Below are positions 10,482 to 55,408 of a stretch of 64,000 bases of DNA, in pieces. Positions within the stretch are counted from its first letter, which is position 1. Each line of letters opens with the position of its first letter. The notes under the pieces were generated by a model. That model ran no database searches and was not told where the DNA came from. It saw nothing but the letters and a program-made list of their open reading frames with translations. A program made the translations under genes and the position numbers. The stretch lies in IMG/VR virus record IMGVR_UViG_3300034012_003212, positions 124,001-188,000 of that record, one strand, 5' to 3'.

Positions 10482-11678
10482 ATGATCCGTTTTTCTGATT
10501 TTGAAAAAATATTTGAGAGTGAGATAGACAAATCGCTCCCCTCTTTCGTAAAGGAACTGATATCCGAATTCTCCGAAAGAGAAGATGTTTTTATTGAACC
10601 ATGGTACGAAGTCGTGATGAAACACTCATCGAAGTCGAAACTCCATGGAATACGATTGTACATCAAGGATATCCTTTTTCGCATAAACTGGAAGAACATT
10701 AACAGCAATTCCATAACGATAGATGTTTGGTTAAAATCAAAGGACGAGAAACAGTCACCAGAGTGGACGATATCTGGAACAGCGAGCATGTTCGCTTCGA
10801 TCCCTGGAATGATCCTTAAAATGATAAATGAATTGTCGATGGATAAACCTGTGACAAAGAGGTTGCAATTGGCTGAATCCATGGATGAGTACTCGCAGGA
10901 AACTCCGAGAGTTGTGAGATCTGAACCCGAGAACACAGTAGACCCTGCCACCATAAGCGAAGAAGAGATACAGGGACTCAATGTACTCGACGACCTCAGA
11001 AACATGCTCATGCTGATAATAGATAACATAAACCCATCTCTCATAGTGTGTGGCCGAGGCGGTGTGGGAAAAACACACACCGTGACAAAGACGTTTGAAG
11101 AATTCGGAATGGATGAAGGAGATGACTATGTGATGATAAAGGGTGCATCCAGTGCTCTTAGCATGTACAAGGCACTGTATTACAACAACGGAAAAACGTT
11201 AGTGTTCGACGACTGCGACAGTGTGTTCAGAGATGAAGATGCTGTTAACATCCTCAAAGCTGCCCTTGATAGCAATGACAGAAGGAAGATAAGCTGGCTC
11301 AGTCGATCAACCTACGATCCTGCTACGGAGACTCCTACGAAAACGAGACCAGTTCCCAACACGTTCGAGTTCGACGGTTGTATAGTGTTCATATCAAACC
11401 TTCCAATAGAATCAATAGATGAAGCAGTGAGAACTCGCAGCTACATAATCGATGTTTCTTTGAACCAAAAGCAGGTGTTTGTGCTCATAGAAAGGAACCT
11501 CGCTGAGATACTTCCTACCGTCAGCTCATCCATAAAGGAAGAAGTTCTCGATTATATGAAAACTTCATACAAATCAAAGCATGGTGAGATGGTGAACTTC
11601 AGGACGTTCATAAAATCTGTGAAGATACGCATGTCCGGCCACCCAAATTGGAAATCCCTCATCAATAAATACGCCTAG
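10482..11678 (+). CDS. AAA+ ATPase with capsid-targeting-like N-terminus
   Basis: GRGGVGKT Walker A, LVFDDCD Walker B, ILKAALDS, AVRTRS; starts MIRFSDFEKIFES. Confidence 0.8.
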   Translation: MIRFSDFEKIFESEIDKSLPSFVKELISEFSEREDVFIEPWYEVVMKHSSKSKLHGIRLYIKDILFRINWKNINSNSITIDVWLKSKDEKQSPEWTISGTASMFASIPGMILKMINELSMDKPVTKRLQLAESMDEYSQETPRVVRSEPENTVDPATISEEEIQGLNVLDDLRNMLMLIIDNINPSLIVCGRGGVGKTHTVTKTFEEFGMDEGDDYVMIKGASSALSMYKALYYNNGKTLVFDDCDSVFRDEDAVNILKAALDSNDRRKISWLSRSTYDPATETPTKTRPVPNTFEFDGCIVFISNLPIESIDEAVRTRSYIIDVSLNQKQVFVLIERNLAEILPTVSSSIKEEVLDYMKTSYKSKHGEMVNFRTFIKSVKIRMSGHPNWKSLINKYA

Positions 11679-12643
11679 GACGTAGCATATATCTCCTGGA
11701 GCTTGAATACAAGAGCAGACAGGTTCAGCGCCTGATCTATCACGTGCACACGTTGCGCCTGGTATTGCGAAACACATTCGGCTATCTTCGGTATAGCCTT
11801 CGTCTTCTCCGGGCGGTTCTCGCGTATCCATTGAATGAATTCATGGCCGCACGCAACCATGACCTCGTCGACTTTGTCCGAATACGAACCTATAACTTCC
11901 TGGTAATTCTTCACTGGATCACACGGGGACGATATGAGGTCAAACAGTTCGGCGAACGACCAATTCATGGCCTTTACATCATCTAACTCGACAGTCTCTA
12001 TCCCCTTTATATGCCAGCTCTGCATGCGGTTGTACATTTTCCTCATATCAGGGAAATTCCTCCGCATGAACTCAGCGAGTGCATCGTCTGATACCCCAAT
12101 TCCCAACTTTGTCGACAGGAGCCTCATTCTTTTCATCTGAGACTCATACATCCATTCTTCTTCTTCCTTGTTAACAGGGTCAAACGATATGACCTCAAAC
12201 CTTGATTGGATTGTGTCAGGAACCTTTGATATGAAATTGCATGTCCCTATGAACCGTGAGTTTGCGGCAAACATCTCGACTGTTGCCCTGAGGGCCTTGT
12301 AGAACTGATCACTCGCCCCGTCCATCTCATCGAGAATGACGACTTTCGTCCTGTCATCAGAATCACTCAAAAGTGATGCAGTACTACAGAAATCTATAAT
12401 GCTGGTCCTCACTGTCTCGACTGAACTTTCGTTCGAAACGTTTATGTATATGTGGTCATACCCCTCGGCTAATATCTTCGCGAGGGTTGTTTTACCGGTT
12501 CCTGGGTTTCCGGTGAGTAGTATGTTCTGATGGACTTTCATGTCCTTCACTTGTTCGCGTATCCTTGGGAGCAACAGCATGTGCTGTAGATCCTTTGGCC
12601 TAAATCTTTCCGTGAACATCTTCTGTGTGACTGCGCTCGGCAT
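11675..12643 (-). CDS. Clamp loader large subunit (gp44/RFC-like)
   Basis: ERFRP, GNPGTGKT, ILDEMD, SRF and PDMR RFC boxes. Confidence 0.93.
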   Translation of the reverse strand: MPSAVTQKMFTERFRPKDLQHMLLLPRIREQVKDMKVHQNILLTGNPGTGKTTLAKILAEGYDHIYINVSNESSVETVRTSIIDFCSTASLLSDSDDRTKVVILDEMDGASDQFYKALRATVEMFAANSRFIGTCNFISKVPDTIQSRFEVISFDPVNKEEEEWMYESQMKRMRLLSTKLGIGVSDDALAEFMRRNFPDMRKMYNRMQSWHIKGIETVELDDVKAMNWSFAELFDLISSPCDPVKNYQEVIGSYSDKVDEVMVACGHEFIQWIRENRPEKTKAIPKIAECVSQYQAQRVHVIDQALNLSALVFKLQEIYATS

Positions 12644-12671
12644 AACGGTTCCTTGATTGTTGAACGATGCT

Positions 12672-13739: not shown

Positions 13740-14400
13740 TCATTGATCAACATCCATAGGAACCAAGAAGTTACCATTTGGCACAACAGCAGAAATAGAG
13801 CCAACATCTTCGCCAATGTTCAAATAGAAGTATCCTCTTTTTGCATTTCCTAAATTTAGATTCCTAATCATCATCCTATTTGCAACCTCATCTGTGTGGG
13901 GATTACTCTGTGTGTTTGACATTGGACCAACTATCTTTACTGGGAATATAATAGGACGACAATCAAAGGGAACAGGTTCTCCGTTTGAGTATGTCGCCCT
14001 CCTTTCTTTTCTTTCTGTTACATAATAATCCTCATATGGAACGTCATTTCCAGCGTTAAACCCCGACTGGGTATAAATGTTTTGCTCTTTTTCCAATTTT
14101 TGCAATGTTCTTTTGCCTGCTATAAGTTTTTCTTGGTATTCTACACTTCCATCCCATATTCCGTCTGCAGGATATCCTATTCTTGCAGAGAGCGCTTCAA
14201 AACATGCTTTGTATGTACCGATATGAATGCCTCTCCCACCTGTAAAATTTTTGTCTGTTGATCCATGATAAAATTGGGAAGTGAATTTTTTTTTCTTTGA
14301 ATCTGTTAATTTCATATGAATCTACACCTTTCTTTTTAAGAAATGATACGGTTTCATCAATGAAACTTTCATTAACATATTGATTATAAGTCTTTACCAA
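13740..14400 (-). pseudogene. ADP-ribosyltransferase-like protein split by a frameshift in an A9 run
   Basis: ORF 14197-14400 (MVKTYNQYVNES...) and ORF 13740-14315 (FYHGS...GIHIGT) join if one A is removed from the run at 14286-14294. Confidence 0.55.
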
Positions 14401-15653: not shown

Positions 15654-16133
15654 TTATTTTCCTTCTATCATTGTCGAAGAAAGCCCTATTGCAAAATCAC
15701 TCTTTTCGATCGCAACATAATCTCCATCTGCCGCAGTTGCATACAACATTTGACCATTCTTCAATTTAAGACTAGCCACAGCGAGTTCCTGATCGTTAAA
15801 ACATATGTACATAGTGCCCTGCGCTTCTTTTCTTACGTTGTCTACCTTCATTTTAAGAAGTATAGATGCACTATCAGCAAAAAGTGCTATCAGGCCGAGT
15901 TGTGAAGATATGATGTCAGTAGACCTAACAAGTGTGATATCTCCATCACGGCGCTCAAAATTAAGGCTGTTTATCTTAGATTTGACCTGCTGGAGGACAT
16001 TCTTATTGAGGAATTTCACGAATTTTGTCATGTCCTTCTTGATGGCCTCCGGCCATTCATCAAAAAGCGGTTGGCCTTCTGTTTCTTCCTTCTCTTCAAA
16101 AATTTCCCGATATGATTTCAAAAATTTTTTCAT
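15654..16133 (-). CDS. Hypothetical protein with capsid-targeting-like N-terminus
   Basis: Starts MKKFLKSYREIFEE; GATATATA upstream at 16165-16172. Confidence 0.65.
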   Translation of the reverse strand: MKKFLKSYREIFEEKEETEGQPLFDEWPEAIKKDMTKFVKFLNKNVLQQVKSKINSLNFERRDGDITLVRSTDIISSQLGLIALFADSASILLKMKVDNVRKEAQGTMYICFNDQELAVASLKLKNGQMLYATAADGDYVAIEKSDFAIGLSSTMIEGK

Positions 16134-16205: not shown

Positions 16206-16595
16206 ATGTCAAAAGAATACAAGAGCAAAAGTTTTGAGGAGTTCGTTTCGTCTTCGAAGGAATATCAGACTCCCAAAAAAATGGGCGATAAGAACATCGA
16301 GCCTAAAACTGGTAAAATGGAGAAATTCCTCGATGATACAAAGACCAACAGCAACATCATGAGCAAGGCTAAAAGCGCAACAGAGTACGATCCTAAGGCC
16401 ATTGTGTTCTCCGATTTCACAAGCAACAAGAAAGCAGAGAAGATGCAATCCATGGTGAAGAAGAACACTGCAGACGGTTCGAGTACAGCAAAGGGTGAAA
16501 AACCCGGTCTTGAGACCATGCCTAATGCAAAGAAAACCAAGAGTTTTGACATAGATGTTACAGAATATAAGCCCAAGTACCTTTCAAAGAAGTAA
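16206..16595 (+). CDS. Lys-rich hypothetical protein, probable internal head protein
   Basis: Starts MSKEYKSKSFEEFVSS; low complexity. Confidence 0.6.
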   Translation: MSKEYKSKSFEEFVSSSKEYQTPKKMGDKNIEPKTGKMEKFLDDTKTNSNIMSKAKSATEYDPKAIVFSDFTSNKKAEKMQSMVKKNTADGSSTAKGEKPGLETMPNAKKTKSFDIDVTEYKPKYLSKK

Positions 16596-21176: not shown

Positions 21177-21884
21177 ATGAAATACGTAAAGCTCTACGAA
21201 CAATGGAAACAAAGCAAAAATGCAAATCAAAGGGTCTATGAAGAAGAGGCGAACTTAGATAATAAACTAGGAAGCGTTTCTCTCAGCAGTCCTGATGAGG
21301 AAATGCAGACCATCAAAAACATTGATGCTAGTGATATTGCAACAATTTCCCAGTTCCAGGGATTGGATGGAAAAAAACAAGCGGCATTCTTGTACAAGAT
21401 GTTGATAGGTTCTTTGAAGAAATATATTGAATCAACTGATGAAAAGATAAAGGTTCACTTAACAATAGATGGGGAGACAAAGAAGGGCGGGTTGATAGTT
21501 GGAACCGATGATACAAAAACTGCAGCCGTGTACATTCTGCCCGCAATAGCATCACAGGAAGATGTTAAGAAGAAGATCAGTAACCTTAATGTTCAAGTTA
21601 TGCGCGTTCCTCCTGGAAGGAATCTGGATCTCATTGACACAAAACGTTCATATGAAACTACGCTGGGTGCGATTGCTAAGTATTTTTCTGAAAATTCAGA
21701 AGATCTATCATCTAAGTTTATAAGTGGTAACACGAATTTAGATGCATTGGCATCGACTATGGGAAAAGCTAAAGATGACTCTGCATTCAGCATGTCTTCT
21801 TATATAGCGCAAATTTCCGATAATTTTGAATCAATGACAAATTCAAATAATTTTGCACCTAAAGAGACTAAGGTGAATCCTTAA
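21177..21884 (+). CDS. Hypothetical protein with capsid-targeting-like N-terminus
   Basis: Starts MKYVKLYEQW; GATATATAG at 21152-21160. Confidence 0.65.
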   Translation: MKYVKLYEQWKQSKNANQRVYEEEANLDNKLGSVSLSSPDEEMQTIKNIDASDIATISQFQGLDGKKQAAFLYKMLIGSLKKYIESTDEKIKVHLTIDGETKKGGLIVGTDDTKTAAVYILPAIASQEDVKKKISNLNVQVMRVPPGRNLDLIDTKRSYETTLGAIAKYFSENSEDLSSKFISGNTNLDALASTMGKAKDDSAFSMSSYIAQISDNFESMTNSNNFAPKETKVNP

Positions 21885-22490: not shown

Positions 22491-22508
22491 AACATCCTCG
22501 CATGATCT

Positions 22509-25925: not shown

Positions 25926-26543
25926 ATGTTTTTAAACGCCAGATATAACCAGTTCAAGTTTTTCCTCCCGAAGGATTTTCTCTACAGATCAGTCGAAGAG
26001 AAATACGAGGATCACCTTAAGCAGATGTCAGTGCCGTACAAATCTGTGATAGATTTTCTCAATTCTACTATAAAGTCCATAACTTTTCCTGGAGTTCAGG
26101 GCGGGGGCACTGTTACGCAATACCAAGCAGCAAAACGCGTGAATTACCGGCAAGCGTTCAAGTTCAATCAGATAGTGAACCGAGATTTTACAGTAACATT
26201 CAGGATGGTAGATGCATATCTCAACTACTGGCTCATGTATGAACAGCTGATGAAATACACAAATTACGAGGACGAGGATGTGGCACAACAGCTTGATGTT
26301 CCGCTTATTAACAATGAATTCTTCCCCGACTTTGAGGTGCAATATCTGACGAGCGATGGGGAGGTTGGAATTCTGCAAAGGCTCAGGCAGATAGTGTACA
26401 CTGGAATAAGTGACTTGACACCATCGTACAACGATATATCAAATGCGACGAGGGACTTCACATGCAGGTTTTCGTTTAACTATCTTGAGCTCCAGGTCCA
26501 TCCGATGAGCTACGATTACAACAACATGAACATATACAAATAA
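25926..26543 (+). CDS. Tail tube/baseplate tube-like structural protein
   Basis: ITFPG, FTVTFRMVD..NYW and FTCRFSFNYLE pattern of gp19/gp54-like folds; AATATATA upstream. Confidence 0.45.
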   Translation: MFLNARYNQFKFFLPKDFLYRSVEEKYEDHLKQMSVPYKSVIDFLNSTIKSITFPGVQGGGTVTQYQAAKRVNYRQAFKFNQIVNRDFTVTFRMVDAYLNYWLMYEQLMKYTNYEDEDVAQQLDVPLINNEFFPDFEVQYLTSDGEVGILQRLRQIVYTGISDLTPSYNDISNATRDFTCRFSFNYLELQVHPMSYDYNNMNIYK

Positions 26544-26544
26544 G

Positions 26545-26787
26545 ATGCTAGAAGTAAACTACAGAGACTATGTGCTGCACAGGAAAGATAACCTACTGAA
26601 CCGAGGTTATGATTGGAGAGGGAACATACTCAAAAGGAGTATTAGTCCTTACTTTTTTTCAAGTCTTACTCGGACATTGACCATTCTTCAGCTCGAGAGG
26701 ATGCTTAATTACATACTCGATTCGGTGAAGATAATCAAAAAGAGCTTCTACTGGACGTATGAGAAAAGCTTCAGGGACTTCAATTGA
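26545..26787 (+). CDS. Hypothetical protein
   Basis: 80-aa ORF tightly packed in the operon. Confidence 0.6.
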   Translation: MLEVNYRDYVLHRKDNLLNRGYDWRGNILKRSISPYFFSSLTRTLTILQLERMLNYILDSVKIIKKSFYWTYEKSFRDFN

Positions 26788-35147: not shown

Positions 35148-35726
35148 ATGAAGGTACTATCATTCTTAGAATTTCTAAAGGAATCTGAGGAAGCAGAAAC
35201 ACCAATAGATTCTATTGAGCCGATTGAAGATGATGTGGAAGGGGAAACCAATGAAGACCTCCGCGCATGGTTCGGAAAAGGAAAAAAGGGTGGATACGGC
35301 GGCGGGGGCTGGGATAGGTATAGCACAACAGGAGAAAGGATTGGTAAATGCGGAGGCGCAGATGAAGGCGATCCGTATCCAGTGTGCATGTCCAGAGAAA
35401 TGGCCGAGAAGCTAGGAAAAAAAGGAATAGCTGCATATGTTAAAAAGAAGAGGGCAGCAAAGAAGAAGGGCGGAGATTCAAAAAAAGGTCTCGAGAGATC
35501 TAAAGGACAGTCTCCTATATGGACTAAGATAAAAATAGATGAATCCTCGATAGAGCAGATTGAGCTAGTATTAGAAAAGAACGTCCCCACTGATAAGAAA
35601 AAATGGGCATACTATATCGCACAGGCAAAGAAAAAGTTTGATGTGTATCCATCTGTTTATGCCAATGCTTGGGCGGCTAAGATGTATAAAAAAGCTGGGG
35701 GCGGTTGGAGGAAGATAGAGAAATAG
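35148..35726 (+). CDS. Basic Gly/Lys-rich T4-like head protein
   Basis: Starts MKVLSFLEFLKES; EDLRAWF, AKKKFDVYPS.YAN and YKKAGGGWR motifs; GATATATAC upstream. Confidence 0.65.
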   Translation: MKVLSFLEFLKESEEAETPIDSIEPIEDDVEGETNEDLRAWFGKGKKGGYGGGGWDRYSTTGERIGKCGGADEGDPYPVCMSREMAEKLGKKGIAAYVKKKRAAKKKGGDSKKGLERSKGQSPIWTKIKIDESSIEQIELVLEKNVPTDKKKWAYYIAQAKKKFDVYPSVYANAWAAKMYKKAGGGWRKIEK

Positions 35727-35762: not shown

Positions 35763-36404
35763 ATGAACGTATTAACATATTCCGAATTCCTTCTTGAAGC
35801 AGAAGAACACAAAATGGGAAGTTCTAGCAAGATTCAAGAAGTCTATAAGAAAGGCACAAAAGAAATCGATCGTCTTATAATGGAGGCGTCAGGAACAGAT
35901 TCAGAAATTATAGATTCTATGATGGATGAATTCATCAAAACTAAAGCCCTAATGGAAGAGGCGGTTACCACGCATGAGTTGGTAAAAAAGCAGACAAAGG
36001 GAAAGATCAATGAGGCCTTTGATGCCGAACAAAGGTTTATAACAAGAGTTATTCAGACGGTGAAATATACGTTCACCTTTAGCAAATACATAAAGGGGCA
36101 TGAAAAGGAACAGAAGACTGTGAACTACGAATCTGTTTTGAAAGATTTGACATCCCTTTTTCCCCAAATCAATGAAGCTTTACAAGAGATCATAGAAAAA
36201 CACACTGAAGTTAAAACAGTCACAAAATCTGAGATCGAGGGCAGTTTGGATAGATCTCGCATAGAGTTAAATGAATCTCTTGCCGATATTTTAGAGTCAA
36301 TTGCAAAGAAGATAAGAGGAATATACGTGAAGCTCGCAAATAAGTTGAACAAAGTGTCAGATAAGATTGATGCTAAGTTGGAAAAGTACAAGGAACTCGT
36401 ATAG
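35763..36404 (+). CDS. Coiled-coil protein with capsid-targeting-like N-terminus
   Basis: Starts MNVLTYSEFLLEA; GATATATAG at 35740-35748. Confidence 0.65.
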   Translation: MNVLTYSEFLLEAEEHKMGSSSKIQEVYKKGTKEIDRLIMEASGTDSEIIDSMMDEFIKTKALMEEAVTTHELVKKQTKGKINEAFDAEQRFITRVIQTVKYTFTFSKYIKGHEKEQKTVNYESVLKDLTSLFPQINEALQEIIEKHTEVKTVTKSEIEGSLDRSRIELNESLADILESIAKKIRGIYVKLANKLNKVSDKIDAKLEKYKELV

Positions 36405-43212: not shown

Positions 43213-43218
43213 CAGCAT

Positions 43219-43728: not shown

Positions 43729-43778
43729 AGTTTTCTCGATAAAAGTAACAACGAATGCATAGTATTATATAATATGGC

Positions 43779-44363: not shown

Positions 44364-44364
44364 A

Positions 44365-45114
44365 ATGGCACTTTGGTTCTACGATAAAGATAGGTGGAAG
44401 ACCATAAACATGCACAAGAAGGAAAACAACCTAACCGCATTCATATGCGGAGGCGGACCTTCGCTGTCTTTGGTGGACCCCCTTGTTCTTCAAGGAAAGA
44501 ATAGATTGATCGTGGGAATGAATAATACGTACCCGTTTATACAGCCGGACATATGGGTTGGAATGGATATTCCAGAATGTTACGATTCCTCTTTGTTCTG
44601 GGAACCCTTTCCTAAAATTATGAGGGGGAATTATGGTTCAAGGATTCACCGAGGGTATGAAGTCAGAAACCTCAACTCTATGTATTTTGCTGATGTTGTC
44701 GAGGGAAAATCCGATGAAACCTTCTTTGACATGACGGAAGACATGAAATTTTCATGGAAGAAAAACACCCTCGCATTTGCCCTTCAATTTACTCTGTGGT
44801 TAGGTGTAAAAAACATACGCCTCGTGGGAGTAGACCTAGACAATTCAAAGAAGGATTATCATGATGGGACGTATTTATCAGATGCTCAACGGGCATCTAA
44901 TTCATTGTTGTATGATCAACTCTTTCCATTTTTGAAATGGTTCAATGTAGAATCACAGAAGAGAGGAATAAATGTTGCATCATGCTCCCATAATTCCAGA
45001 ATAAATGAAATATTCCCATACATCCATTACATGGATGCGATAAAATACCTTGAAATAGATGTTCCAAGGGGAAGACTAAAAACCCATGTTCTCGAAAAGG
45101 ATGAAAATGAATAA
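44365..45114 (+). CDS. DUF115/Maf-like (sialyltransferase-fold) glycosyltransferase
   Basis: ICGGGPSL, GMNN, PDIWVGMD and LGVKNIRLVGVD motifs. Confidence 0.7.
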   Translation: MALWFYDKDRWKTINMHKKENNLTAFICGGGPSLSLVDPLVLQGKNRLIVGMNNTYPFIQPDIWVGMDIPECYDSSLFWEPFPKIMRGNYGSRIHRGYEVRNLNSMYFADVVEGKSDETFFDMTEDMKFSWKKNTLAFALQFTLWLGVKNIRLVGVDLDNSKKDYHDGTYLSDAQRASNSLLYDQLFPFLKWFNVESQKRGINVASCSHNSRINEIFPYIHYMDAIKYLEIDVPRGRLKTHVLEKDENE

Positions 45115-45775
45115 AAATCTAAACGCATTTTTTGATCGAATATACTGCATAAATCTCGACAAACGAAAGGATCGATGGGAAAAATCAAGCGATCTGTTCA
45201 ATGAATATAGCATTGATGTAACAAGGGTTTCTGGAATAGAAGATCCGACTCTTCCCTGGGATGGCCTCAGGAGAACGATAATCGGTGTATTTGATACTGC
45301 CATAAAAGAGGGGCTCAATCGAATCCTTATATTAGAGGATGACATCGATTGGACCAATGATTCTATTTCAGGATTCGATCCATGCAAGAATTCCCTTCCT
45401 GATGATTGGGATATGTTCTATTTCAGCGCCGCCCATCAATTCTGGCCAGTAAAACACAATAATCACTTGTTTAAACTTTCATGGTCTACTGCAGCTCATG
45501 CCATAGGATTTAATTCAAAGTGTTTTTCGTTTATCAGGGAATCATTACAAGATAATAAAAAAGCTATAGATGTGACATACTCCGATTTGCAGAAAAAATT
45601 AAATGCGTACTGTGCGATAGATCCCATCGCATGGCAGAGGAGAGATTACAGTGACATAGAGCACCAGGAAAAATGGTACCCGTATCTCAAGAACTTGAAC
45701 TTTTACGAAGAATATATGTATAATAAAGTGACTGTTGACGGAAGGGATACTATCACTGGCGAACAGAAATTTTAA
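45086..45775 (+). CDS. GT25-family glycosyltransferase
   Basis: YCINLDKRKDR, ILEDD and DWDMFY motifs. Confidence 0.85.
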   Translation: MFSKRMKMNKNLNAFFDRIYCINLDKRKDRWEKSSDLFNEYSIDVTRVSGIEDPTLPWDGLRRTIIGVFDTAIKEGLNRILILEDDIDWTNDSISGFDPCKNSLPDDWDMFYFSAAHQFWPVKHNNHLFKLSWSTAAHAIGFNSKCFSFIRESLQDNKKAIDVTYSDLQKKLNAYCAIDPIAWQRRDYSDIEHQEKWYPYLKNLNFYEEYMYNKVTVDGRDTITGEQKF

Positions 45776-45786
45776 AGGCATTTGCA

Positions 45787-46740
45787 ATGAAAATTCTTCT
45801 AACAGGCGGAGCTGGTTTCATAGGAAGCCACATAGCAGAGATGTATTGTTCACATGGTTTTGACGTCGTAGTGGTCGATGACCTCTCGACTGGAAAACTT
45901 GCAAATCTTGCATTTGATTCCAGCCACCATCTGAAATTTGTGCATGAAGATATAAGGGACCCCGAAGCGATGGAACGGGTGTTCGATGAATACGGGCCTT
46001 TCGATATCGTGAACCACCAGGCGGCACATGTGTCCGTATCTGAATCAATGAAGTCCCCGGTTCATGACATAGAAACTAATATCATAGGGACATTGAATGT
46101 TCTTTCGATAGCGAGAGGTTGCTCTAAATTCATATTCTCTTCATCCGGGGGAACAGTATATGGAATGCACACAACCCCGAGGGATGAGAGTCATCCAACG
46201 GAACCATTATCCATCTATGGCGTTTCGAAACTTGCATGCGAAAAATTGGTAAAGTTGAAGGCAGGGGAGATGAATTTCTCTTATGCTATACTCAGGTACG
46301 CTAACGTATATGGCCCAAAACAAACACCGCACGGAGAGGCTGGAGTAGTCTCTATATTTCTCGAAAAGATGTTATCCGACCAAGTGTGCACACTCTACAG
46401 CGGAGGTCAGTGCAGTAGGGATTACATCTACGTGACAGACGTCGTTAAAGCCAATGAAATATGCACGCTAACACCGGGAGCAAATGGAATATATAACGTC
46501 TCGACAGGTAAGACTATAAGGACAAAAGAGGTGTATTCGTTTCTTTCAGAAAAACTTATAGAAAAATCTATTGTTGATAGCACGAAAAAGGAATTAGCTC
46601 CTGATAGAGCGGGAGATATTCCATACTCGTGTTGCATACCTGGTTGCATACCCAGCTGGAAACCGGAAGTTGATTTTGAAAGAGGTCTTGATAATTTGCT
46701 GGCGTACGCAAACTGTAAGGAGGATGTATGCGTGAAATAG
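45787..46740 (+). CDS. NAD-dependent epimerase (UDP-glucose 4-epimerase-like)
   Basis: TGGAGFIG, YGVSK, RYANVYGP and RDYIYV motifs. Confidence 0.93.
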   Translation: MKILLTGGAGFIGSHIAEMYCSHGFDVVVVDDLSTGKLANLAFDSSHHLKFVHEDIRDPEAMERVFDEYGPFDIVNHQAAHVSVSESMKSPVHDIETNIIGTLNVLSIARGCSKFIFSSSGGTVYGMHTTPRDESHPTEPLSIYGVSKLACEKLVKLKAGEMNFSYAILRYANVYGPKQTPHGEAGVVSIFLEKMLSDQVCTLYSGGQCSRDYIYVTDVVKANEICTLTPGANGIYNVSTGKTIRTKEVYSFLSEKLIEKSIVDSTKKELAPDRAGDIPYSCCIPGCIPSWKPEVDFERGLDNLLAYANCKEDVCVK

Positions 46741-47009
46741 TGCTTGTCGCGGAAGAAAATAACCGCAAGGAGGCCGAGATGATAGAAAACAGAAAGGTGA
46801 TTGCTTTGTCTGAGAAATTCAATATAGACAAAGATGCACTGAAGAACATATCGTTCGAAGATTGGTCACGTGGATACATCTGCGTAATATCAAAATCAAG
46901 AATCGAACAGATGGATTCAAATGATCATATAGTACATCAGTATGGAGAGGTTAGTAATAATCATTACTACTTTGTCAAGAATGAGGCAATTTTCAATAAG
47001 GATGAATAA
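46728..47009 (+). CDS. Hypothetical protein
   Basis: 93-aa ORF with AGGAGG upstream. Confidence 0.55.
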   Translation: MREIVLVAEENNRKEAEMIENRKVIALSEKFNIDKDALKNISFEDWSRGYICVISKSRIEQMDSNDHIVHQYGEVSNNHYYFVKNEAIFNKDE

Positions 47010-47299
47010 TGGGTAGCACAAAAAGCGCAGAAAAAATAATATTCTTGAAGTCAAATTCACCCGGGCCTTATGATATACCCATGAATGTTGTCGACGAGAA
47101 CGAAACAAGATACCTCTTTGAAATTGAGATCGACGATGCTTTCCATAGTTTTCCGATACTCAAAGAGGATATAGTCAGTAGTATATCCCTTCCGAGTGAA
47201 GATAGCACTATAATGGTGGAACTGAAGAAGGAAGCAATGGAAGTACTATATCGAGACATAGTGAGTATGGTTCGTTCCAATAATAACGATATATTCTGA
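47009..47299 (+). CDS. Hypothetical protein
   Basis: 96-aa ORF coupled to its neighbours. Confidence 0.55.
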   Translation: MGSTKSAEKIIFLKSNSPGPYDIPMNVVDENETRYLFEIEIDDAFHSFPILKEDIVSSISLPSEDSTIMVELKKEAMEVLYRDIVSMVRSNNNDIF

Positions 47300-48009
47300 T
47301 GAATCTCAACAATTACTTTGATCATATCTATTGCTTGAATCTCCCGGAATGCAAAGAAAGAGCAGCGGATACTCAGAAGAGGTGTGATGATTTCGGTATA
47401 TCCTTCTCATTTTTTCCTGCCATATCTGGAAAGTTGTTCTCAGACATACATTCCGGCTATTCTGGCGCACGAAGCACAAGGGTGTCTAACCCTAATTACA
47501 TGGCATGTGCATTGGGTCACCTGTCAATATACAGACACGCTCTGAGCAATTCATACGATAGGATACTTGTCATAGAGGACGACCTTTTGTTCAACCGTAA
47601 CATGGATTCCATTTTGGTTTCTGCAAAAGACGAGATACCCGACCAGTGGGACCTATTATATCTTGCATTCATACCGCTGACCGATGATCTCATGTTCTGG
47701 AATTACGGGATAATCGATGACAGATTCATCGGAGATAAGGTGTTTAGAGCAAAGAACCTGTGGTCGGCAATGGCGTATGGAATATCGGCCGACACTATGA
47801 GATGGATGGTTGATAGGTTCAACGGTTCTTTTGACAAGGAACTCGATCGTGTATTCGTTGAAGAGGTCCAGCCTAGGGGGAATTCTTTTGCTGTGTGCCC
47901 CCAGATTTTTGCAGGATACGATAATATGTCGAACAACTCTGAGCGTTTTGACACGATATTCGTAAAGAGCTTCGATTCCCGCAGGGCAAGGCCCGAGGAT
48001 TATGTTTAA
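47299..48009 (+). CDS. GT25-family glycosyltransferase
   Basis: YCLNL, CALGH, IEDD and WDLLYL motifs. Confidence 0.85.
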   Translation: MNLNNYFDHIYCLNLPECKERAADTQKRCDDFGISFSFFPAISGKLFSDIHSGYSGARSTRVSNPNYMACALGHLSIYRHALSNSYDRILVIEDDLLFNRNMDSILVSAKDEIPDQWDLLYLAFIPLTDDLMFWNYGIIDDRFIGDKVFRAKNLWSAMAYGISADTMRWMVDRFNGSFDKELDRVFVEEVQPRGNSFAVCPQIFAGYDNMSNNSERFDTIFVKSFDSRRARPEDYV

Positions 48010-48020
48010 CGTTACACTAT

Positions 48021-48302
48021 ATGGATATGGATTCTAGAATTCAGATGGAATTTTTGGATAGATTCACTATTATGACAAAACTTGATTTCTGTTTTGGCAT
48101 ATGCACACTCATCCTTGATATTTTAGAAAAGGATGAAAGGGATAAATTCAAGAAGGTTAAAATTGAGTGGGAAAAGGCGATCAGGGAAAGATTTGAGTTG
48201 GGAATAAAGACCATCCAGGAGTATGAGACCGTGACTGAAGATGACATCAAGAACCTTAACCTATTCTTGGATGCAACATTAAAGGAGATGAATCTAAAAT
48301 GA
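48021..48302 (+). CDS. Hypothetical protein
   Basis: 93-aa ORF. Confidence 0.55.
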   Translation: MDMDSRIQMEFLDRFTIMTKLDFCFGICTLILDILEKDERDKFKKVKIEWEKAIRERFELGIKTIQEYETVTEDDIKNLNLFLDATLKEMNLK

Positions 48303-48565
48303 TGACGAGTAAAGATGAGATATGGAAAAGAGCTAATGCAGCAAATGCAATTAGGTGTATAGCGCTTCTCGAGAGGATTTTTCCTAGTATGGCATCAGAT
48401 GCTATCATAGAATCTGGCAGCGTGTCGTCTGTTGAGAAGGTATCAACGAAGGAAAGAGCCCTTGAAAAAATTCGCCTCGGCCTCCAATCAATAACGGAAA
48501 CCGAGGCGAAAAATATACTGCTCGCACTCGACGAGAAAAAACCACAAAGATCTATAAAATTCTGA
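48299..48565 (+). CDS. Hypothetical protein
   Basis: 88-aa ORF with ATGA overlap. Confidence 0.55.
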   Translation: MMTSKDEIWKRANAANAIRCIALLERIFPSMASDAIIESGSVSSVEKVSTKERALEKIRLGLQSITETEAKNILLALDEKKPQRSIKF

Positions 48566-48567: not shown

Positions 48568-49047
48568 TTAGAGAATCGGGCACTGGAAGTTATTCGTTCC
48601 AGTGAACTCAGCACACGCAAGATCATACATGCGTTTTGACATTTCTGGATCATTTACCGTCTTCCACTTTGCAGTATCAGCTCCCTGTGCAGCAAAGCTA
48701 GCTTCAAGTTCTAATTTATTTTTAGAGACCATGTAGTCTACTGCTGAATCCATCCATGATTTGAAACTGCTCATCTGTGACTGAGATAGTTCTCCTTGTT
48801 TTTGGGTGAACTCATCCAGATCTTTCATAACCTCATCCTTCTTTTTCTCCATTTCGGCGTAGATACGAGAACGCTCATCTGCGCTCTTCGCTTCCTTTAG
48901 AAGTTTTGTGTAAGACAGTTCTATATCCACCAACTTCTTTGCCTGGGTTTTTACCATCGTAACAGAAGAATCAACGATCTTTTTGAAATCGTCTACTGTC
49001 ATCTCGGACTCAAATATGAAATCCTTGAATTTTTTTACAAATGCCAT
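48568..49047 (-). CDS. Helical protein with capsid-targeting-like N-terminus
   Basis: Starts MAFVKKFKDFIFES. Confidence 0.65.
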   Translation of the reverse strand: MAFVKKFKDFIFESEMTVDDFKKIVDSSVTMVKTQAKKLVDIELSYTKLLKEAKSADERSRIYAEMEKKKDEVMKDLDEFTQKQGELSQSQMSSFKSWMDSAVDYMVSKNKLELEASFAAQGADTAKWKTVNDPEMSKRMYDLACAEFTGTNNFQCPIL

Positions 49048-49060: not shown

Positions 49061-49432
49061 TTAGTCTTCGTCTTCTCCCATGTCCTCATCATCTTCATCG
49101 TGGCGATGATGTTTCTTGGAATGATGCTTTTCTTCCTCATCTTCATCATCATCTTCTCCCCTTTCTTCATCATAGCTCTCTTCGCCTTCTTCTGACTCAC
49201 CCTCTTCTTCGTCTTCATCAATCTCGATAACTTCTTTTGCCTTCATTACAAGGTCTTCAACCTTTTCCATGAATGCATCATGCAATTCCTCTGGATCTGC
49301 ATCTTCGTCATCGTTATCTTTCCATTCGTTCCATGCATTCACCAGTTCTTCAAGCATCTCATAGAGATCTTTGTGGCTCACAACCTCTTCGGTTTCTTCT
49401 GTCCACTCTTCAAAAATTTGTACGTACTTCAT
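49061..49432 (-). CDS. Highly acidic protein with capsid-targeting-like N-terminus
   Basis: Starts MKYVQIFEEWTEE; D/E-rich; GATATATAC at 49449-49457. Confidence 0.65.
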   Translation of the reverse strand: MKYVQIFEEWTEETEEVVSHKDLYEMLEELVNAWNEWKDNDDEDADPEELHDAFMEKVEDLVMKAKEVIEIDEDEEEGESEEGEESYDEERGEDDDEDEEEKHHSKKHHRHDEDDEDMGEDED

Positions 49433-50661: not shown

Positions 50662-50925
50662 CTACTTTTTTTCTGATAGGCTCTGCATGAGTTCGTCGGT
50701 TATCTTTCCGTCGCACTTCATCCCATTATCTGCCTGATACGCAAGAATGGCAGACCTCACAATATCATCGTACAGATCAATCTCGCTCTGGTCCGGATTC
50801 GACGGTCCTGTTTCAAGATATCCTAGATCCACTAAAGATGATTTTACTTTCTTCATAATCTCATCAGATGTGGCTTCAGGTTTTTTGGAATCCTTTACAT
50901 ATTGTGCAAACTTCTTGACTTTCAT
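50662..50925 (-). CDS. Peptidoglycan-binding domain protein with capsid-targeting-like N-terminus
   Basis: Starts MKVKKFAQYVKDS; LVDLGY...AILAYQADNGMKCDG. Confidence 0.7.
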   Translation of the reverse strand: MKVKKFAQYVKDSKKPEATSDEIMKKVKSSLVDLGYLETGPSNPDQSEIDLYDDIVRSAILAYQADNGMKCDGKITDELMQSLSEKK

Positions 50926-51035: not shown

Positions 51036-51533
51036 TTACCACTCGGATCCACCGATGAAACGATTAGCTGCGTTTCGGCCTTCGATGTGTGTCTGCATTG
51101 CTTCTTCTACGCCAATACATTCTGCCAACATCTCTCGCCAATTGGGCCAGATGCTTTCATCGATGAAGCTAAGATCGCAACCGGTGAAATTTGTCCCCTT
51201 TCCGTACCTAGAAAGATAGAATGAAGGGATATTATCTGTTCCCGGCTGTGTTGCGTCTAATCCCTTACAGTAGGAAAAATCAGCACCGGAGAAATCACAA
51301 CCTTCCATTTTAACATTGGTGAAATCAGAACCGGAGAATTTTGCGTTTACAAAAGGACCGCTAAGTTCAGCACCATCAAGTATAGCACCTTCGATCTCCG
51401 TAACAAAGTCCGGGCCGAAGTATGTTTCCATGATTTCTTCCTTTGTCATAGCCTTTACCGGGGGTGTTGTTTCTCCCATTTCATTTTCGTTCATGCGGAT
51501 GAATGAACTGAAAGTTTTTACGTGTTTTGCCAT
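51036..51533 (-). CDS. Pentapeptide-repeat protein with capsid-targeting-like N-terminus
   Basis: Starts MAKHVKTFSSFIRMNEN; AKFSG SDFTN CDFSG ADFSY repeats. Confidence 0.7.
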   Translation of the reverse strand: MAKHVKTFSSFIRMNENEMGETTPPVKAMTKEEIMETYFGPDFVTEIEGAILDGAELSGPFVNAKFSGSDFTNVKMEGCDFSGADFSYCKGLDATQPGTDNIPSFYLSRYGKGTNFTGCDLSFIDESIWPNWREMLAECIGVEEAMQTHIEGRNAANRFIGGSEW

Positions 51534-51591: not shown

Positions 51592-53643
51592 TTATGCTAA
51601 AACCCTCGGAACATTAACAACCTTAGATCCAGCGCCTGGTAAAAAGTTCTGAAAAGATGCATTGTCCCAAACAACCCATATAGTATTTCTAATCCACGAT
51701 CTGTATCTCTTATTACTACATTCTGTCTGGTCTCCTATGTAACCATCGGTAAAAATAAACACGAGATCTGCCTTTTTGAATTTTTCATCTATGAAATCCA
51801 TCGTAGGAGCAAAATCAGTGCCACCTCCTCCTTGTACCTTTGAATCAAGCTTTTTGAAGAAATTGTATCTCGAAAAGTTCGATTTGTTATCAAATTCAAC
51901 CACACTTTCAGTATAAACCCCGCTATCCCAACAGAAAACCGTAACCTTAGATGTTATTTTCTTCGATTCTAGAATAGCAGATAGCTCTCTCATCAAATCA
52001 TGGACAATTCCAACCATAGAACCAGATGTGTCCAATGCCACTACAATATGATCAAGGTTTTTACGATCAGGTACGATCTGAGATCTAACCATCCTGGAAT
52101 TTCCTAAGAATTTCTTGTTAGGTATCCTAGATCTTTCATCGGATATTGCATTTCCTATGTATCGTGCTAATTTTTTCCTCCAATCTATATCAGTTTCAGC
52201 TTTTCTCCTATTAAGAAGGTCTATACACATATTAATGAAGCTTATGCCTCCCATTCCCCGTCCAGCCTTCCTGGTAGATGTTTTTGACCTCTGGCCTATC
52301 TCAACAGCTTCTCTGGCTATTTTTTCCCAATCGGATTTGTCTTTTATTTGCTCATTCGGTATTTCTCCTAAAATTTTACAAAGTGCGTTTCCTTCTTCTT
52401 GCGATATTACTTCGCCAGGCGCAAAAATCTTAATTGGAATAGGTTTACGCTTATCGTTAAGCTTAGATTTTGGTTTTCCTTGGCCACCAGGGGTTCCTTC
52501 AGTTCCAGGGGTTCCTTCAGTTCCAGGGGTTCCTTCAGTTCCAGGGGTTCCTTCAGTTCCAGGGGTTCCTTCAGTTCCAGGGGTTCCTTCAGTTCCAGGG
52601 GTTCCTCCTTCTCCATCTCCTTCTCCATCTGGTTCTTCGTGATCCCCGCTACTTAAACAATACCACCCAGTATCTTCATCATTACCACCAAAAACGATTG
52701 TCTCGCTTAACGTGCTGTGTTCAGCAGACACAGTTTTTTCGAACGAATTAAATGTGAGCAGCGCATCGCGATGTTCTTTAATCTCTTTGGTCTTTTTGCG
52801 ATTAGCCACCGGGTTTACTGCCGTACTACTAGATGAACCTGATATCCAAGAATTGTCAATCTTCGGGATTTCCATCTGGAGTTCTTTTACTTTAGGGTAT
52901 ATTTCTTCAGCAGGAGCATCGCCAAATTTATCACTATACCATCCTATGCCTAGCCATTCATCTTTAATGTAATCGCTTTCGGTCATTCCTAGTGCTTCTG
53001 CCACCCTTACGTTTATCTCTATGTCTGTTGCGATATTCCACTTGTGGCTATCCCTGCCGCCCATGCGCAAAAAGTGTTCCTGTATGCAATGGTACAACTC
53101 ATGGATGAGGATGAATGCTGATGTCCTCTTGGGCATGCCATAAAAGAACAGAGGACATATGAATATGTGTCTTCCATCAGTGGCCGCAGTTCTTATCCCT
53201 TCATTGTAACCATAGATCATCTTCATCTTAAGAAATGCAGGCGCAAGGGGAAACAACTCCGGTTGTCTCGATATGAGTAGGATCGTGTCCTGTACATCAT
53301 TTTCCACTGAATCCTTAATTTGCTGGAGTTCTTGTTTTGTGAATATACTGAACAGCATGACACCTATTCCCTTGAATGATCTCATTATATCACACCTTTC
53401 TTCAAGGGAATACTTCTTTATCGTCTCAGCATGATTTACCTGTATCCACCTGGCATTATTTTCATCAACACCGTCCTGCAGGATACACCCCTTTTTCTTC
53501 ATGTCGTCTATTAAAAGGCCCACTTTCTGGGCCTTTTCCTTCAGTATAGAAGGATCTATGGATTCATTTACGGCCTGGGATTCAAGAACACTTCGGTTCT
53601 TGAGAAAATCGCTATAATTGAATATGGAACGAATTTTTGACAT
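51592..53643 (-). CDS. DUF2201-type metallopeptidase plus vWA domain protein
   Basis: TAATDG, HELYH (HExxH), WNIATD, DTSGS MIDAS, GGGGTDF and FTDG motifs. Confidence 0.9.
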   Translation of the reverse strand: MSKIRSIFNYSDFLKNRSVLESQAVNESIDPSILKEKAQKVGLLIDDMKKKGCILQDGVDENNARWIQVNHAETIKKYSLEERCDIMRSFKGIGVMLFSIFTKQELQQIKDSVENDVQDTILLISRQPELFPLAPAFLKMKMIYGYNEGIRTAATDGRHIFICPLFFYGMPKRTSAFILIHELYHCIQEHFLRMGGRDSHKWNIATDIEINVRVAEALGMTESDYIKDEWLGIGWYSDKFGDAPAEEIYPKVKELQMEIPKIDNSWISGSSSSTAVNPVANRKKTKEIKEHRDALLTFNSFEKTVSAEHSTLSETIVFGGNDEDTGWYCLSSGDHEEPDGEGDGEGGTPGTEGTPGTEGTPGTEGTPGTEGTPGTEGTPGTEGTPGGQGKPKSKLNDKRKPIPIKIFAPGEVISQEEGNALCKILGEIPNEQIKDKSDWEKIAREAVEIGQRSKTSTRKAGRGMGGISFINMCIDLLNRRKAETDIDWRKKLARYIGNAISDERSRIPNKKFLGNSRMVRSQIVPDRKNLDHIVVALDTSGSMVGIVHDLMRELSAILESKKITSKVTVFCWDSGVYTESVVEFDNKSNFSRYNFFKKLDSKVQGGGGTDFAPTMDFIDEKFKKADLVFIFTDGYIGDQTECSNKRYRSWIRNTIWVVWDNASFQNFLPGAGSKVVNVPRVLA
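52487..52606. repeat. 18-bp tandem repeat (GTPGTE)n in the vWA-protein linker
   Basis: CCAGGGGTTCCTTCAGTT x6 plus a partial copy, perfect. Confidence 0.95.
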
Positions 53644-53665
53644 ATCTCTTTGTGTAGCGTAATTT

Positions 53666-55408
53666 TTACTTAACGTATACTGCAGTATCGCGTTGTACGA
53701 TTATAGCCGTCTTGTTATCGAATATGTCAGAATACTTCTTTGTCAATTTTTCGATGTATTCATCCAGTACAGGTTTATATACCTTCACGTCGTACGTTGC
53801 TCCGCCTCTGAGGCTAAGCTCAGGGTGCTGTTTCAGGAAGTCGAGTGCAAGGCACACAGTTGATGTCTTATCGCCTATGTTAAGGATGTATGTCAAGAAG
53901 TTCTTGATTTCCTGCGGCGTACAAACTTTACCCAATTTCATGCGAAGTATTGAAACCCTGTAAGCAAATCTCAGCGCATTGATATCGTATTTTTCAAATT
54001 CAGACTCAGAAGGATTGATGGATCCTGTGTCCATGGTCTTCTCGTCGTTTTCTCCCTTTTTCTTTGGCCAAGGAGCAGCATTTTTGGGATCTGTATACAC
54101 CTTCTCGAGGGATTGCGTATCAACTATGCTCATCAATTTAATGAACGCAACGTATTCGGATGCTATTTCAGTTCCGAGTTGCATCGCAATAATATCCTCT
54201 ACTTCGGTCATTTTCAATTTCCTTCCGAGGCGAACGGCTCTTCTGTGCAATTCGCGTGCTGCACTCTCCCATCCGCGGGGATCTGCTTCCACTGTGTTCT
54301 CTGCATCAGGGTCCATCCTGTGCCAGAACTGAGGATTGAGGTTGAGGAAGTCGAGCATCTCTTCAGGGAAGAACTTTTCCAGTTCTTTTGTCTTCGGATT
54401 ATATGCAGTGTTCTGCTTTTGATACTCTGCCCAGTTTTCCATCGTCGGAACAAAGTTAAAGTGCCTGAACCTCGCCTTTTGAGCAGGTGAGCGAAGTATA
54501 TCCATCGGGGTATCAGGTTCATCCTGAGGCCTGTTGGAAGCAGCGACAATGATCCATTTCGGAGCGAGCCTAAAATTCTCAAACACCCTCTCGGATGCCA
54601 AATTCATTATCGCAGTGATGGAACTCTTCGGTGCGCGGCTGATCTCGTCAAAGAATATGATACCACCGCCGCCACAGTTCGCTTTCTTTATTGCTTCTTT
54701 TCTCGCCTCGCCCGTCAGCGTATCATCGAACAGAGGCAGTGACGACAGAGGAACAAGCTGCTGTTTAGTTGTTCCGAACTCGTCCTGACCTATCGTCGGG
54801 AGCATGAACAAATCTTTATCGATGATGTTCAGGTTGCAATAACGTGCTCCCATGCCTGCTTCTTTTGTCTTCCAGTTAACTATACCAGTCTTTCCTATAC
54901 CAGGAGCTCCCCATACGAGCAAGGGCTTGGGATACTGCGAATAAGGAAGTTCTTCTGTTTCATCAAGGCTCTTGACGAATTCAATCATCGCATCGAGCTC
55001 TTCCTTGAAGAACTCAGGCCCTTTGTTCGGAAGAGATGGGTCTATTGATTCAAATTTTATGTATGCTTCTGTGATCGCAACGGGATTCTCATTGGGCTCC
55101 TCTGTTGGGACTTCGGGTTCCTGCACGGGTGATTCATCAGAAGCTGCATTGATGATGCTCTTCTCAACTTCTCCTGGGTATATCGTCAACCCTTTGATCT
55201 CCCCGTTCTGTACTTGCATGTATTTGTTCAGGACCCATGAGTTCGGGCCTTCGAATTTATCCCCCAGCCAACGAAGTCCAGGGATCTTGCTCATCGCGCG
55301 GCGGAGTGCTTCTCCTATCTTCGAGACAGCGTCCTTGAAGAATCCTTCGTTGAGGTTCTTGGATTCACTTATGAAATCCGAATATCTTTTTACGTGGTAA
55401 CGTTTCAT
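53666..55408 (-). CDS. MoxR-like AAA+ ATPase
   Basis: WGAPGIGKT, FFDEISRA, AASNRP, ARFRH and DPRGWE motifs; paired with the vWA gene; GATATATAG at 55424-55432. Confidence 0.9.
   Translation of the reverse strand: MKRYHVKRYSDFISESKNLNEGFFKDAVSKIGEALRRAMSKIPGLRWLGDKFEGPNSWVLNKYMQVQNGEIKGLTIYPGEVEKSIINAASDESPVQEPEVPTEEPNENPVAITEAYIKFESIDPSLPNKGPEFFKEELDAMIEFVKSLDETEELPYSQYPKPLLVWGAPGIGKTGIVNWKTKEAGMGARYCNLNIIDKDLFMLPTIGQDEFGTTKQQLVPLSSLPLFDDTLTGEARKEAIKKANCGGGGIIFFDEISRAPKSSITAIMNLASERVFENFRLAPKWIIVAASNRPQDEPDTPMDILRSPAQKARFRHFNFVPTMENWAEYQKQNTAYNPKTKELEKFFPEEMLDFLNLNPQFWHRMDPDAENTVEADPRGWESAARELHRRAVRLGRKLKMTEVEDIIAMQLGTEIASEYVAFIKLMSIVDTQSLEKVYTDPKNAAPWPKKKGENDEKTMDTGSINPSESEFEKYDINALRFAYRVSILRMKLGKVCTPQEIKNFLTYILNIGDKTSTVCLALDFLKQHPELSLRGGATYDVKVYKPVLDEYIEKLTKKYSDIFDNKTAIIVQRDTAVYVK

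Follow-up and report, generated by a model that had tools for sequence, protein, structure and literature searches.

Why would about 13 otherwise unrelated proteins of one uncultivated phage begin with the same kind of short sequence? The question is raised by a stretch of 64,000 nucleotides, referred to here as the window, which corresponds to positions 124001-188000 of contig IMGVR_UViG_3300034012_003212 (JGI 3300034012 Ga0334986_0000005; 260,658 bp). A preliminary description of this DNA compared these N-termini with the capsid targeting sequence (CTS) of phage T4 and proposed that they form a portable tag, which loads a diverse set of enzymes into the phage head for delivery at infection. 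The present analysis suggests that the shared N-termini are probably T4-type prohead-targeting propeptides that are cleaved by a protease. The parts of the earlier proposal that are open to sequence analysis are supported by the match to T4, the presence of protease and capsid genes, the portability of the tag and a late motif upstream of the genes. About 121 kb of the 260-kb contig was covered, consisting of the window plus flanking stretches, and the count of tagged genes applies to that region. Genes are referred to below by the position at which they start.

Shared N-termini and their likeness to the T4 tag

All 13 N-termini translate as first described, with the same coordinates and strands (Table 1). 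Beyond the tag, the proteins have no mutual BLASTP similarity at E <= 0.01. The count of about 13 stands in part, with about nine or ten strong tags and three or four weak ones. By a simple procedure 92 genes were called in the window, and N-terminal positions were compared with internal positions of the same proteins. The core [FY]x[DEQS][FYW] begins in the first 12 residues of 14 of the 92 genes, compared with 3.3 expected from the internal rate. When ..[ED] is added to the core, seven genes remain (0.55 expected), and a further leading [KR]x leaves four (0.12 expected). The motif is thus more common at N-termini than elsewhere, which is the comparison on which the preliminary description had made its proposal depend.

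The T4 tags provide a reference for individual positions. In T4 (NC_000866), the internal proteins (IPs) IPII and IPIII begin with MKTYQEFIAEA and IPI begins with MKTFKEFTST...ITEA. Mutagenesis of the T4 CTS by Mullaney and Black places targeting mainly at residues 4 and 7 and processing at residues 8 and 10, and Asp at position 10 stops cleavage but not targeting (PMC9026906). The window tags are conserved at the positions that map to these residues, with an aromatic at 4 and 7, an aliphatic at 8 and Glu at 10. Tags with the T4 positions include (M)VKTYNQYVNE then S, VKRYSDFISE then S, VLTYSEFLLE then A and KKFKDFIFE then S. The first of these, at 14400, is the closest match in the window to the T4 tag. 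A matrix built from 12 window tags was also run over all six frames of 32 kb of T4, and IPIII, IPII and IPI came out on top among coding-strand positions. Here as in T4, a 10-20-residue N-terminal tag is found on unrelated proteins.

The tags are not uniform. The spaced aromatic pair [FY]-x-x-[FYW] is present in 12 of the 13, and the 16133 tag has a spacing of four instead. The full 4/7/8/10 pattern is found in the tags of 14400, 35148, 35763, 49047, 55408 and 49432, and in that of 50925 with Asp in place of Glu. In the remaining tags an x-E-[SGN] site lies 2-12 residues beyond, or is lacking. The tags of 16133, 16206 and 21177 are weak members that match only part of the motif; in 16206 the aromatics and Val are kept and the processing position has no Glu. 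The tags of 21177 and 49432 belong to a subtype, MK[YH][ILV]KL[FY]E.[FW], which is common among relatives.

The tag starts at residue 1-10 of the 13 proteins, and in five genes it is offset by 2-9 residues from the ATG. The Val codons before the offset tags are GTA and not GTG, so they do not represent hidden alternative starts. GTG starts that would put the tag at residue 1 in every gene were ruled out for this reason. A reading of the tags as signal peptides was also ruled out, because they lack a hydrophobic core and are charged and amphipathic. The window tags differ from those of T4 in that they often lie 1-9 residues from Met1 and in that Asn is favoured before the Glu.

The tag is also conserved in relatives. 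It is kept in homologues of three unrelated families (MoxR, NTPase and ADP-ribosyltransferase (ART)-like), down to about 25% identity. In the MoxR family, 14 homologues at 24-57% identity keep the tag (for example MKPVKSFEQF...LNEG and MGYQIKNYSDWINES), and N20-E21 is invariant; shorter, cellular-type MoxR relatives have no tag. The NTPase at 10482 has 31 orthologues that begin ML[KN]F[KN]DFE.[LI]NE, in which Phe occupies precisely positions 4 and 7. Among relatives further removed, those of 450-520 aa carry other variants of the tag, and 300-aa relatives carry none. Many homologues of the ART-like protein have an in-frame tag 13-30 residues before the conserved FYHGSTDKN, such as MKNLKTFDEFLNES and MKFISSFNDFLLES. 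A set of 79 related IMG/VR loci (1.46 Mb, 1,901 genes) was found through MoxR. The window-tag matrix matched N-termini in these loci 41 times as often as internal positions, and 32 times as often without the MoxR genes. The 150 tagged genes of the 79 loci fall into 44 clusters, which include DUF2201/VWA, CHAP, lysozyme, LRR, GATase, NUDIX and DUF4494 proteins. The retention of the tag in three unrelated families, together with the existence of untagged shorter relatives, indicates that the tag is portable.

The tagged genes also share an upstream motif. About eight of them had been placed directly behind it, and eight indeed have [AG]ATATATA 15-31 nt upstream. In total, GATATATA is seen 17 times compared with 2.8 expected, and none of 100 shuffles reaches 17. 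Of the 16 [AG]ATATATA sites that lie 5-31 nt before a start codon, eight belong to tagged genes; the co-occurrence of tag and motif has an odds ratio of 16.5 (Fisher p = 6e-5). Each of the tagged genes 49047, 50925 and 53643 follows immediately after a same-strand gene that has both the tag and the motif. The motif GATATATA is also found in front of the sheath, protease-scaffold and large tail genes of this genome, which fits late expression. In the related loci the upstream motif is GATATATA, GATAAATA or TATAAATA. The last of these is the T4 late-promoter consensus, and the motif of this phage is late-promoter-like.

It is conceivable that what the N-termini share reflects the mRNA or the translation of late genes, such as an A/T-rich start without a Shine-Dalgarno sequence, or that it arose by chance. 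The tagged genes do have A-rich leaders, no Shine-Dalgarno sequence and Lys-rich first codons. However, the conserved positions of the tag are encoded by freely varying synonymous codons (TTT/TTC, TAT/TAC, GAA/GAG and four Ser codons), so the conservation is at the level of the peptide and not of the mRNA. The enrichment over expectation is also 5- to 30-fold in the window and 30- to 100-fold in the 79 other loci, and the tag is conserved at 25-50% protein identity. Several motif-bearing late genes are untagged (24121, 42151, 57108, 58066 and structural genes). An origin in the mRNA or in chance is therefore extremely improbable.

Two observations concern the motif in its own right. About 8 kb upstream of the window, the genes for the tail tube and an exonuclease flank that of a 222-aa sigma70_r2 protein, which is a candidate late sigma factor for GATATATA. 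Two overlapping GATATATA sites on opposite strands form a palindrome at 28264-28273, inside the ORF 27379-28440 (-) and 285 nt upstream of an endolysin-like gene at 28557.

Prohead protease and scaffold repeats

The phage has a protease of the type that processes the T4 prohead. A 624-aa Peptidase_S77 protein, a member of the T4 gp21 family (PF03420, 45.2 bits, cut-off 27), is encoded at contig positions 86348-88222, about 36 kb upstream of the window. The protease domain is 32% identical to T4 gp21 and keeps the catalytic His and Ser motifs (GELDHP compared with GELNHP in T4, and ISSRAAG compared with VSSRGLG). The gene directly after it encodes a 609-aa Gp23-family major capsid protein (PF07068, 128.7 bits), and a T4_gp13 homologue is near both. 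This genome resembles that of T4 in encoding both a gp21-family protease and a gp23-family capsid protein, and with the T4_gp13 homologue this makes the phage a distant member of the T4-like head assembly. The distance is very large. The phage is uncultivated, has a genome of 260 kb and lacks DNA similarity to known phages apart from a 0.5-kb aminotransferase match to Flavobacterium phages.

The major capsid protein has a propeptide site, [LMI]-N-E-[SGN], at about residue 45-52, which is kept in 17 of 17 relatives. This site is of the same type as the tag sites VNE then S, LNE then G and VLE then S. The cleavage site of T4 gp23 (FGSFLTE then A) fits the tag pattern too. The motif might be only a recognition or cleavage site for the protease, or a site for another late factor, that serves to activate or inactivate proteins in the cytoplasm without encapsidation. 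The [LIV]-x-E-[SAG] site that the tags share with the capsid propeptide and the invariant N-E dipeptide of the MoxR homologues would agree with such a role. However, the best-conserved positions of the tag are the two upstream aromatics, which are targeting determinants in T4 (PMC9026906), and gp21-family proteases are assembled into the prohead core and are active inside it (PMC5694885, PMC9026906). The 50925 tag also has Asp at the cleavage position while the aromatic pattern is kept. A role in cleavage without encapsidation is therefore very unlikely.

The protease differs from that of T4 in being fused to a scaffold with tandem tag-like repeats. A C-terminal helical extension of about 450 residues, in which T4 gp21 differs, carries 11 tandem repeats of 14 residues at residues 259-428, behind the protease domain. 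The repeat consensus is I-x-Y-S-N-Y-L-A-E-N-L-D-K-S, and its core is aromatic-x-x-aromatic-aliphatic-x-Glu, as in the tags. In an AlphaFold2 (AF2) model of the fusion protein, the N-domain is predicted to be rich in beta structure, a single uninterrupted helix spans the repeats and the C-domain is helical. Sixteen IMG/VR relatives, at 32-68% identity, share both the fusion and the repeats. In one relative the repeats read IAYSEYIAES, which is near the T4 tag YQEFIAEA.

The nearest full-length GenBank relatives of the fusion are in the 462-735-kb 'huge phage' assemblies LR756500-LR756504 and LR745206. A 30-kb part of positions 185000-234999 of LR756500.1 (462-kb assembly, GC 25%) holds the fusion and the capsid gene together with three tagged genes that adjoin one another (MKYIQTYKDFLIES and similar). 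The IMG/VR contig sets found through the protease and through MoxR are disjoint, and the fusion and the tags were seen together only in this phage's contig and in LR756500.

The likeness between repeats and tags was assessed with profiles built from the repeats. When 35,359 positions in the 121 kb were ranked with a BLOSUM profile from the repeats alone, the top position was the MoxR tag and the next was the 14400 tag. A matrix of 113 distinct repeat units, in which the tags were not used as input, was applied to the 79 independent loci, where its matches were 224 times as frequent at N-termini as at internal positions, or 22 times once the MoxR genes were set aside. With a strict log-odds matrix built from this phage's own 11 repeats, the MoxR tag was the only one to rank high. 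The link between repeats and tags rests on the BLOSUM profile and the N-terminal enrichment, because the strict matrices favoured only the MoxR tag.

Tagged genes and neighbouring features

The tagged genes of the window and their upstream sites are collected in Table 1. Two weak tag candidates that were absent from the preliminary description are included.

Table 1. Tagged genes, tag candidates and motif sites in the window (coordinates of the window; a gene on the minus strand starts at its higher coordinate).
Coordinates	Strand	Feature	N-terminal tag	Upstream motif	Pfam match
10482..11678	+	P-loop NTPase, 398 aa	MIRFSDFEKIFES, Phe at 4 and 7	AATATATA, 22 nt upstream	
13740..14315	-	ART-like body, 191-aa ORF, in a frame different from that of the tag piece			
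14197..14400	-	First piece of split ART-like gene, 67 aa, TTG start	(M)VKTYNQYVNES		
15654..16133	-	159-aa protein	MKKFLKSYREIFEE, weak/atypical	GATATATA, 31 nt upstream	
16206..16595	+	129-aa protein, divergent from the 16133 gene	...KSKSFEEFVSS, partial		
21177..21884	+	235-aa protein	MKYVKLYEQW	GATATATA, 17 nt upstream	
25926	+	Weak tag candidate	MFLNARYNQFKFF	behind AATATATA	
26545 (within 25926..26787)	+	Weak tag candidate	MLEVNYRDYVLH		
35148..35726	+	192-aa acidic protein	MKVLSFLEFLKE then S, full	GATATATA, 21 nt upstream	
35763..36404	+	213-aa protein	MNVLTYSEFLLE then A, full	GATATATA, 15 nt upstream	
48568..49047	-	159-aa protein, downstream of the 49432 gene on the same strand	MAFVKKFKDFIFE then S, full		
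49061..49432	-	123-aa protein	MKYVQIFEEWTEE	GATATATA, 17 nt upstream	
50662..50925	-	Peptidoglycan-binding protein, 87 aa	MKVKKFAQYVKDS, Asp at the T4 processing-Glu position		PF01471, E = 5e-7
51036..51533	-	Pentapeptide-repeat protein, 165 aa	...VKTFSSFIRMNE then N	AATATATA, 23 nt upstream	PF00805, E = 2e-11
51592..53643	-	683-aa protein, putative metallopeptidase domain (DUF2201_N) + VWA	...IFNYSDFLKNRSVLE then S		
53666..55408	-	MoxR-like AAA ATPase, 580 aa	...VKRYSDFISE then SKNLNE then G	GATATATA, 16 nt upstream	
55425..55432	-	GATATATA late-promoter-like motif, example before the 55408 gene			
10452(+), 16165(-), 21152(+), 35119(+), 35740(+), 49450(-), 51557(-)		Motif sites before other tagged genes			

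Several of the functions first assigned to the tagged proteins are borne out by profile matches, namely peptidoglycan binding, pentapeptide repeats and the peptidase-vWA protein. The DUF2201_N homologue in one related locus (L016) is tagged too. In the window, the gene of the DUF2201_N and VWA protein adjoins that of MoxR, and the same pairing is found in L016. The assignment of the 55408 product to MoxR also holds, on the basis of borderline AAA and AAA_5 scores (PF00004, 22.0 bits, cut-off 21.2; PF07728, 21.5 bits, cut-off 22), a Walker A motif (GAPGIGKT), a Walker B motif (IIFFDE) and the VWA neighbour. The 10482 product had been called AAA+. It contains Walker A (GRGGVGKT at 191) and a Walker B-like motif (LVFDD at 240) and matches phrog_1250, but it has no Pfam AAA match; it is a P-loop NTPase by its Walker motifs only. 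Pfam and PHROGs gave nothing informative for the genes at 15654-16133, 16206-16595, 21177-21884, 35148-35726, 35763-36404, 48568-49047 and 49061-49432.

Two further genes are related to the tagged set. An untagged paralogue of the pentapeptide-repeat protein at 51036-51533 (-) is located at 59924-60379 (-), so the two form a natural pair with and without the tag. Past the end of the window (window coordinates 67404-67844, -), a gene for a 146-aa protein that begins MKHVKLIEQW lies behind AATATATAG. This is likely a 14th tagged gene, in which Ile replaces the first aromatic.

The ORF at 14400 had been listed as tagged and ART-like. The tag is present, but the tag piece and the ART-like body are in different frames, which overlap around a run of nine A at about 14284-14294. 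The two parts were searched separately and not joined. The 191-aa product of the body is on record from three contigs, and 90 homologues of the body are intact single ORFs, mostly of 180-200 aa. Of the 88 homologues that carry the domain motif, 40 have the aromatic-x-x-aromatic core in the first 16 residues and 24 reach the threshold of the window-tag matrix. His17, several Tyr and Glu169 are invariant among the homologues.

The evidence on the ART-like label itself is mixed. An AF2 model of the body has a mean predicted local distance difference test (pLDDT) of 92.9. In VIA-align, a large majority of the top 50 matches have the ART fold (RES, ParT, MbcT, diphtheria toxin, PARPs and Arr), one of them being a domain of a pre-ejectosome protein from a cyanophage. 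The highest Z reached, 6.0, is under the level of 8 that the tool advises. Atlas features of the body point to ART-PolyVal, PARP and Arr. On the other side, Foldseek gave no match with E < 0.4 in the PDB and only weak matches in the AlphaFold DB clusters, and the body has no Pfam or PHROG match. Membership of the 13740-14315 product in the ART superfamily is a lead suggested by the predicted structure.

The window also encodes a T4-type terminase, helicase, PhoH and DNA polymerase, a ribonucleotide reductase, thymidylate synthase and dUTPase, an endolysin-like protein and a sugar-modification cluster. Upstream of the window are genes for the tail sheath, tail tube, the sigma70_r2 protein and large tail proteins. 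The long same-strand cluster at 36618-48565 (+) contains sugar-nucleotide and glycosyltransferase-type genes, with an aminotransferase like that of Flavobacterium phage immuto and an epimerase-like N-terminus at 45787. This cluster may serve the modification of DNA or of surface glycans. Three paralogous proteins of about 190 aa at 21921-23952 (-), which are 39-47% identical, have N-termini like those of signal peptides or lipoproteins.

At least nine tandem paralogues at 59136-63839 (-) start with MSEWITDRLP, in a stretch of higher GC (0.46-0.48). Each has a Shine-Dalgarno-like AAGGAG upstream, whereas the tagged late genes have A-rich leaders without one. The paralogues may be a separate, possibly early, gene class with a different initiation signal.

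Proposed packaging and delivery, and known systems

The tagged proteins would be expressed late from GATATATA-type promoters. The tag is predicted to form a short amphipathic helix, with the aromatics at 4 and 7 and the aliphatic at 8, that would dock the protein onto the prohead core; in this lineage the core would be built by the protease-scaffold fusion. Since the long helix of the scaffold has 11 repeats of the same motif, the tag may act as a single copy of the repeat that co-assembles with the scaffold. Taken by itself, docking through mimicry of the scaffold repeats falls just short of an even chance. After closure of the shell, the gp21-family protease domain would cut after Glu in [LIVF]-x-E, followed by [SAG], which is a type of site common to the capsid propeptide, the scaffold repeats and the tags. 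Cleavage of the tag would free the encapsidated cargo in the head, and at least part of the cargo would be ejected with the DNA. Both steps are predicted by analogy with the T4 IPs and Alt. Delivery of the cargo into the host is about evenly balanced.

The tagged proteins could also enter the prohead by means of the tag and be core or assembly components instead of a delivered payload. They would then be degraded, expelled or retained in the head without acting in the next host. In T4, the core proteins gp67 and gp68 and the scaffold are also substrates of the protease (PMC5694885, PMC9026906). MoxR-VWA pairs are chaperone-like, and the scaffold of this phage carries the same motif as the tags. 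However, the types of cargo suit an action in the host. They include the ART-like protein, which may be compared with T4 Alt, and the peptidoglycan-binding protein, as well as the CHAP, lysozyme, NUDIX and LRR proteins of relatives. The tagged set is also hypervariable, as seen from its 44 clusters, which is like the IP loci of T-even phages and unlike a conserved assembly machine. A role limited to the core or to assembly is therefore unlikely.

Several points weigh against the interpretation as targeting propeptides of a delivered cargo. Only six or seven of the 13 tags have the full 4/7/8/10 pattern, and three or four are weak. Confidence in the AF2 model of the fusion protein is low (mean pLDDT 58). 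Half of the matches of the 113-repeat matrix outside MoxR come from one 105-aa family. In the window, this matrix gives the MoxR tag a score of 12.4 and most other tags scores of -9 to +4, with one lower; the likeness of tag and repeat is therefore one of a shared core pattern and not of identity. No significant similarity links the scaffold region to T4 gp22, which contains at most relics of the motif (AYINYVQRE, EWLAEN and EQLIAEA). No cultured relative with virion proteomics was found, and the nearest GenBank phages are unannotated metagenomic assemblies. Finally, the MoxR and VWA proteins (580 and 683 aa) are a typical chaperone pair and may serve assembly rather than delivery.

A bolder form of the targeting interpretation can be put forward tentatively. 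The tag would literally be one scaffold-repeat unit, coiled-coil mimicry would recruit the cargo and the fused protease would free it. This arrangement would be ancestral to the T4 CTS and would extend through a large clade of uncultivated jumbo and huge phages, with the 462-735-kb genomes included. Each phage would deliver to its host a hypervariable load of dozens of enzymes, such as ART-like proteins, peptidoglycan hydrolases, NUDIX proteins, AAA+ ATPases and LRR proteins. The balance leans against this form as a whole.

The number of tagged genes sets this phage apart from T4. About 13 tagged genes are found in 45 kb, with large enzymes (580-683 aa) among them, compared with three IPs and Alt in T4. 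The cleavage motif of the jumbo phages phiKZ, 201phi2-1 and SPN3US is of the A/S/G-x-E type. These phages are similar in that they load many head proteins, including ejection or inner-body proteins (PMC5694885). A diverged gp21 homologue cuts their proteins after Glu in a short motif such as ALE or SLE, and the propeptides are thought to act as targeting sequences (PMC5694885). The propeptides are mostly longer than 100 residues and have no shared short tag, and no scaffold counterpart has been identified in these phages (PMC5694885). The phage described here has an evident scaffold, which forms one protein with the protease.

The order of the fusion is also known elsewhere. Lambda C/Nu3 and P2 gpO, which are fusions or nested genes, combine in a single polypeptide a protease domain with a helical scaffolding domain behind it, and the fusion of this phage has the same order. 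The lambda and P2 proteases belong to other families, and we know of no tandem tag-like repeats or repeat-carrying cargo family in these systems. The Dar anti-restriction proteins of P1 are loaded in the head during assembly and injected, and they protect the DNA. The term 'capsid targeting sequence' has reportedly been used for them in one paper. Their loading follows an ordered, protein-dependent pathway (DarA, Hdf) and is not known to depend on one shared short N-terminal motif.

The CTS of T4, known since 1996, has become a tool in engineering. To our knowledge, CTS-type tags have been described essentially only in T-even phages, and we know of no explanation of how ten residues find the prohead core. 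The papers listed for 'capsid targeting sequence' concern T4, P1, P22 or SPN3US-type phages. In the literature covered, which did not extend to the huge-phage papers themselves, no account was found of this clade having CTS-type tags or a protease-scaffold fusion with repeats. The CTS-type tag itself is already known from T4; the repeat-built, protease-fused scaffold is new here.

The occurrence of the tag in a distant, uncultivated jumbo-phage lineage, together with a scaffold made of tandem tag motifs, leads to a testable hypothesis in which the tag mimics a scaffold repeat. If this is true, a one-motif system, in which scaffold repeat, tag and cleavage site are the same, would explain how the T4 CTS finds the core. 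The tag can also be used as a simple sequence rule to predict head-packaged and possibly injected proteins from metagenomic phage genomes. The tagged cell-wall hydrolases and the ART-like, NUDIX and AAA+ proteins that it picks out are candidate host-takeover or anti-defence factors, and the tag could serve to load foreign proteins into large capsids.

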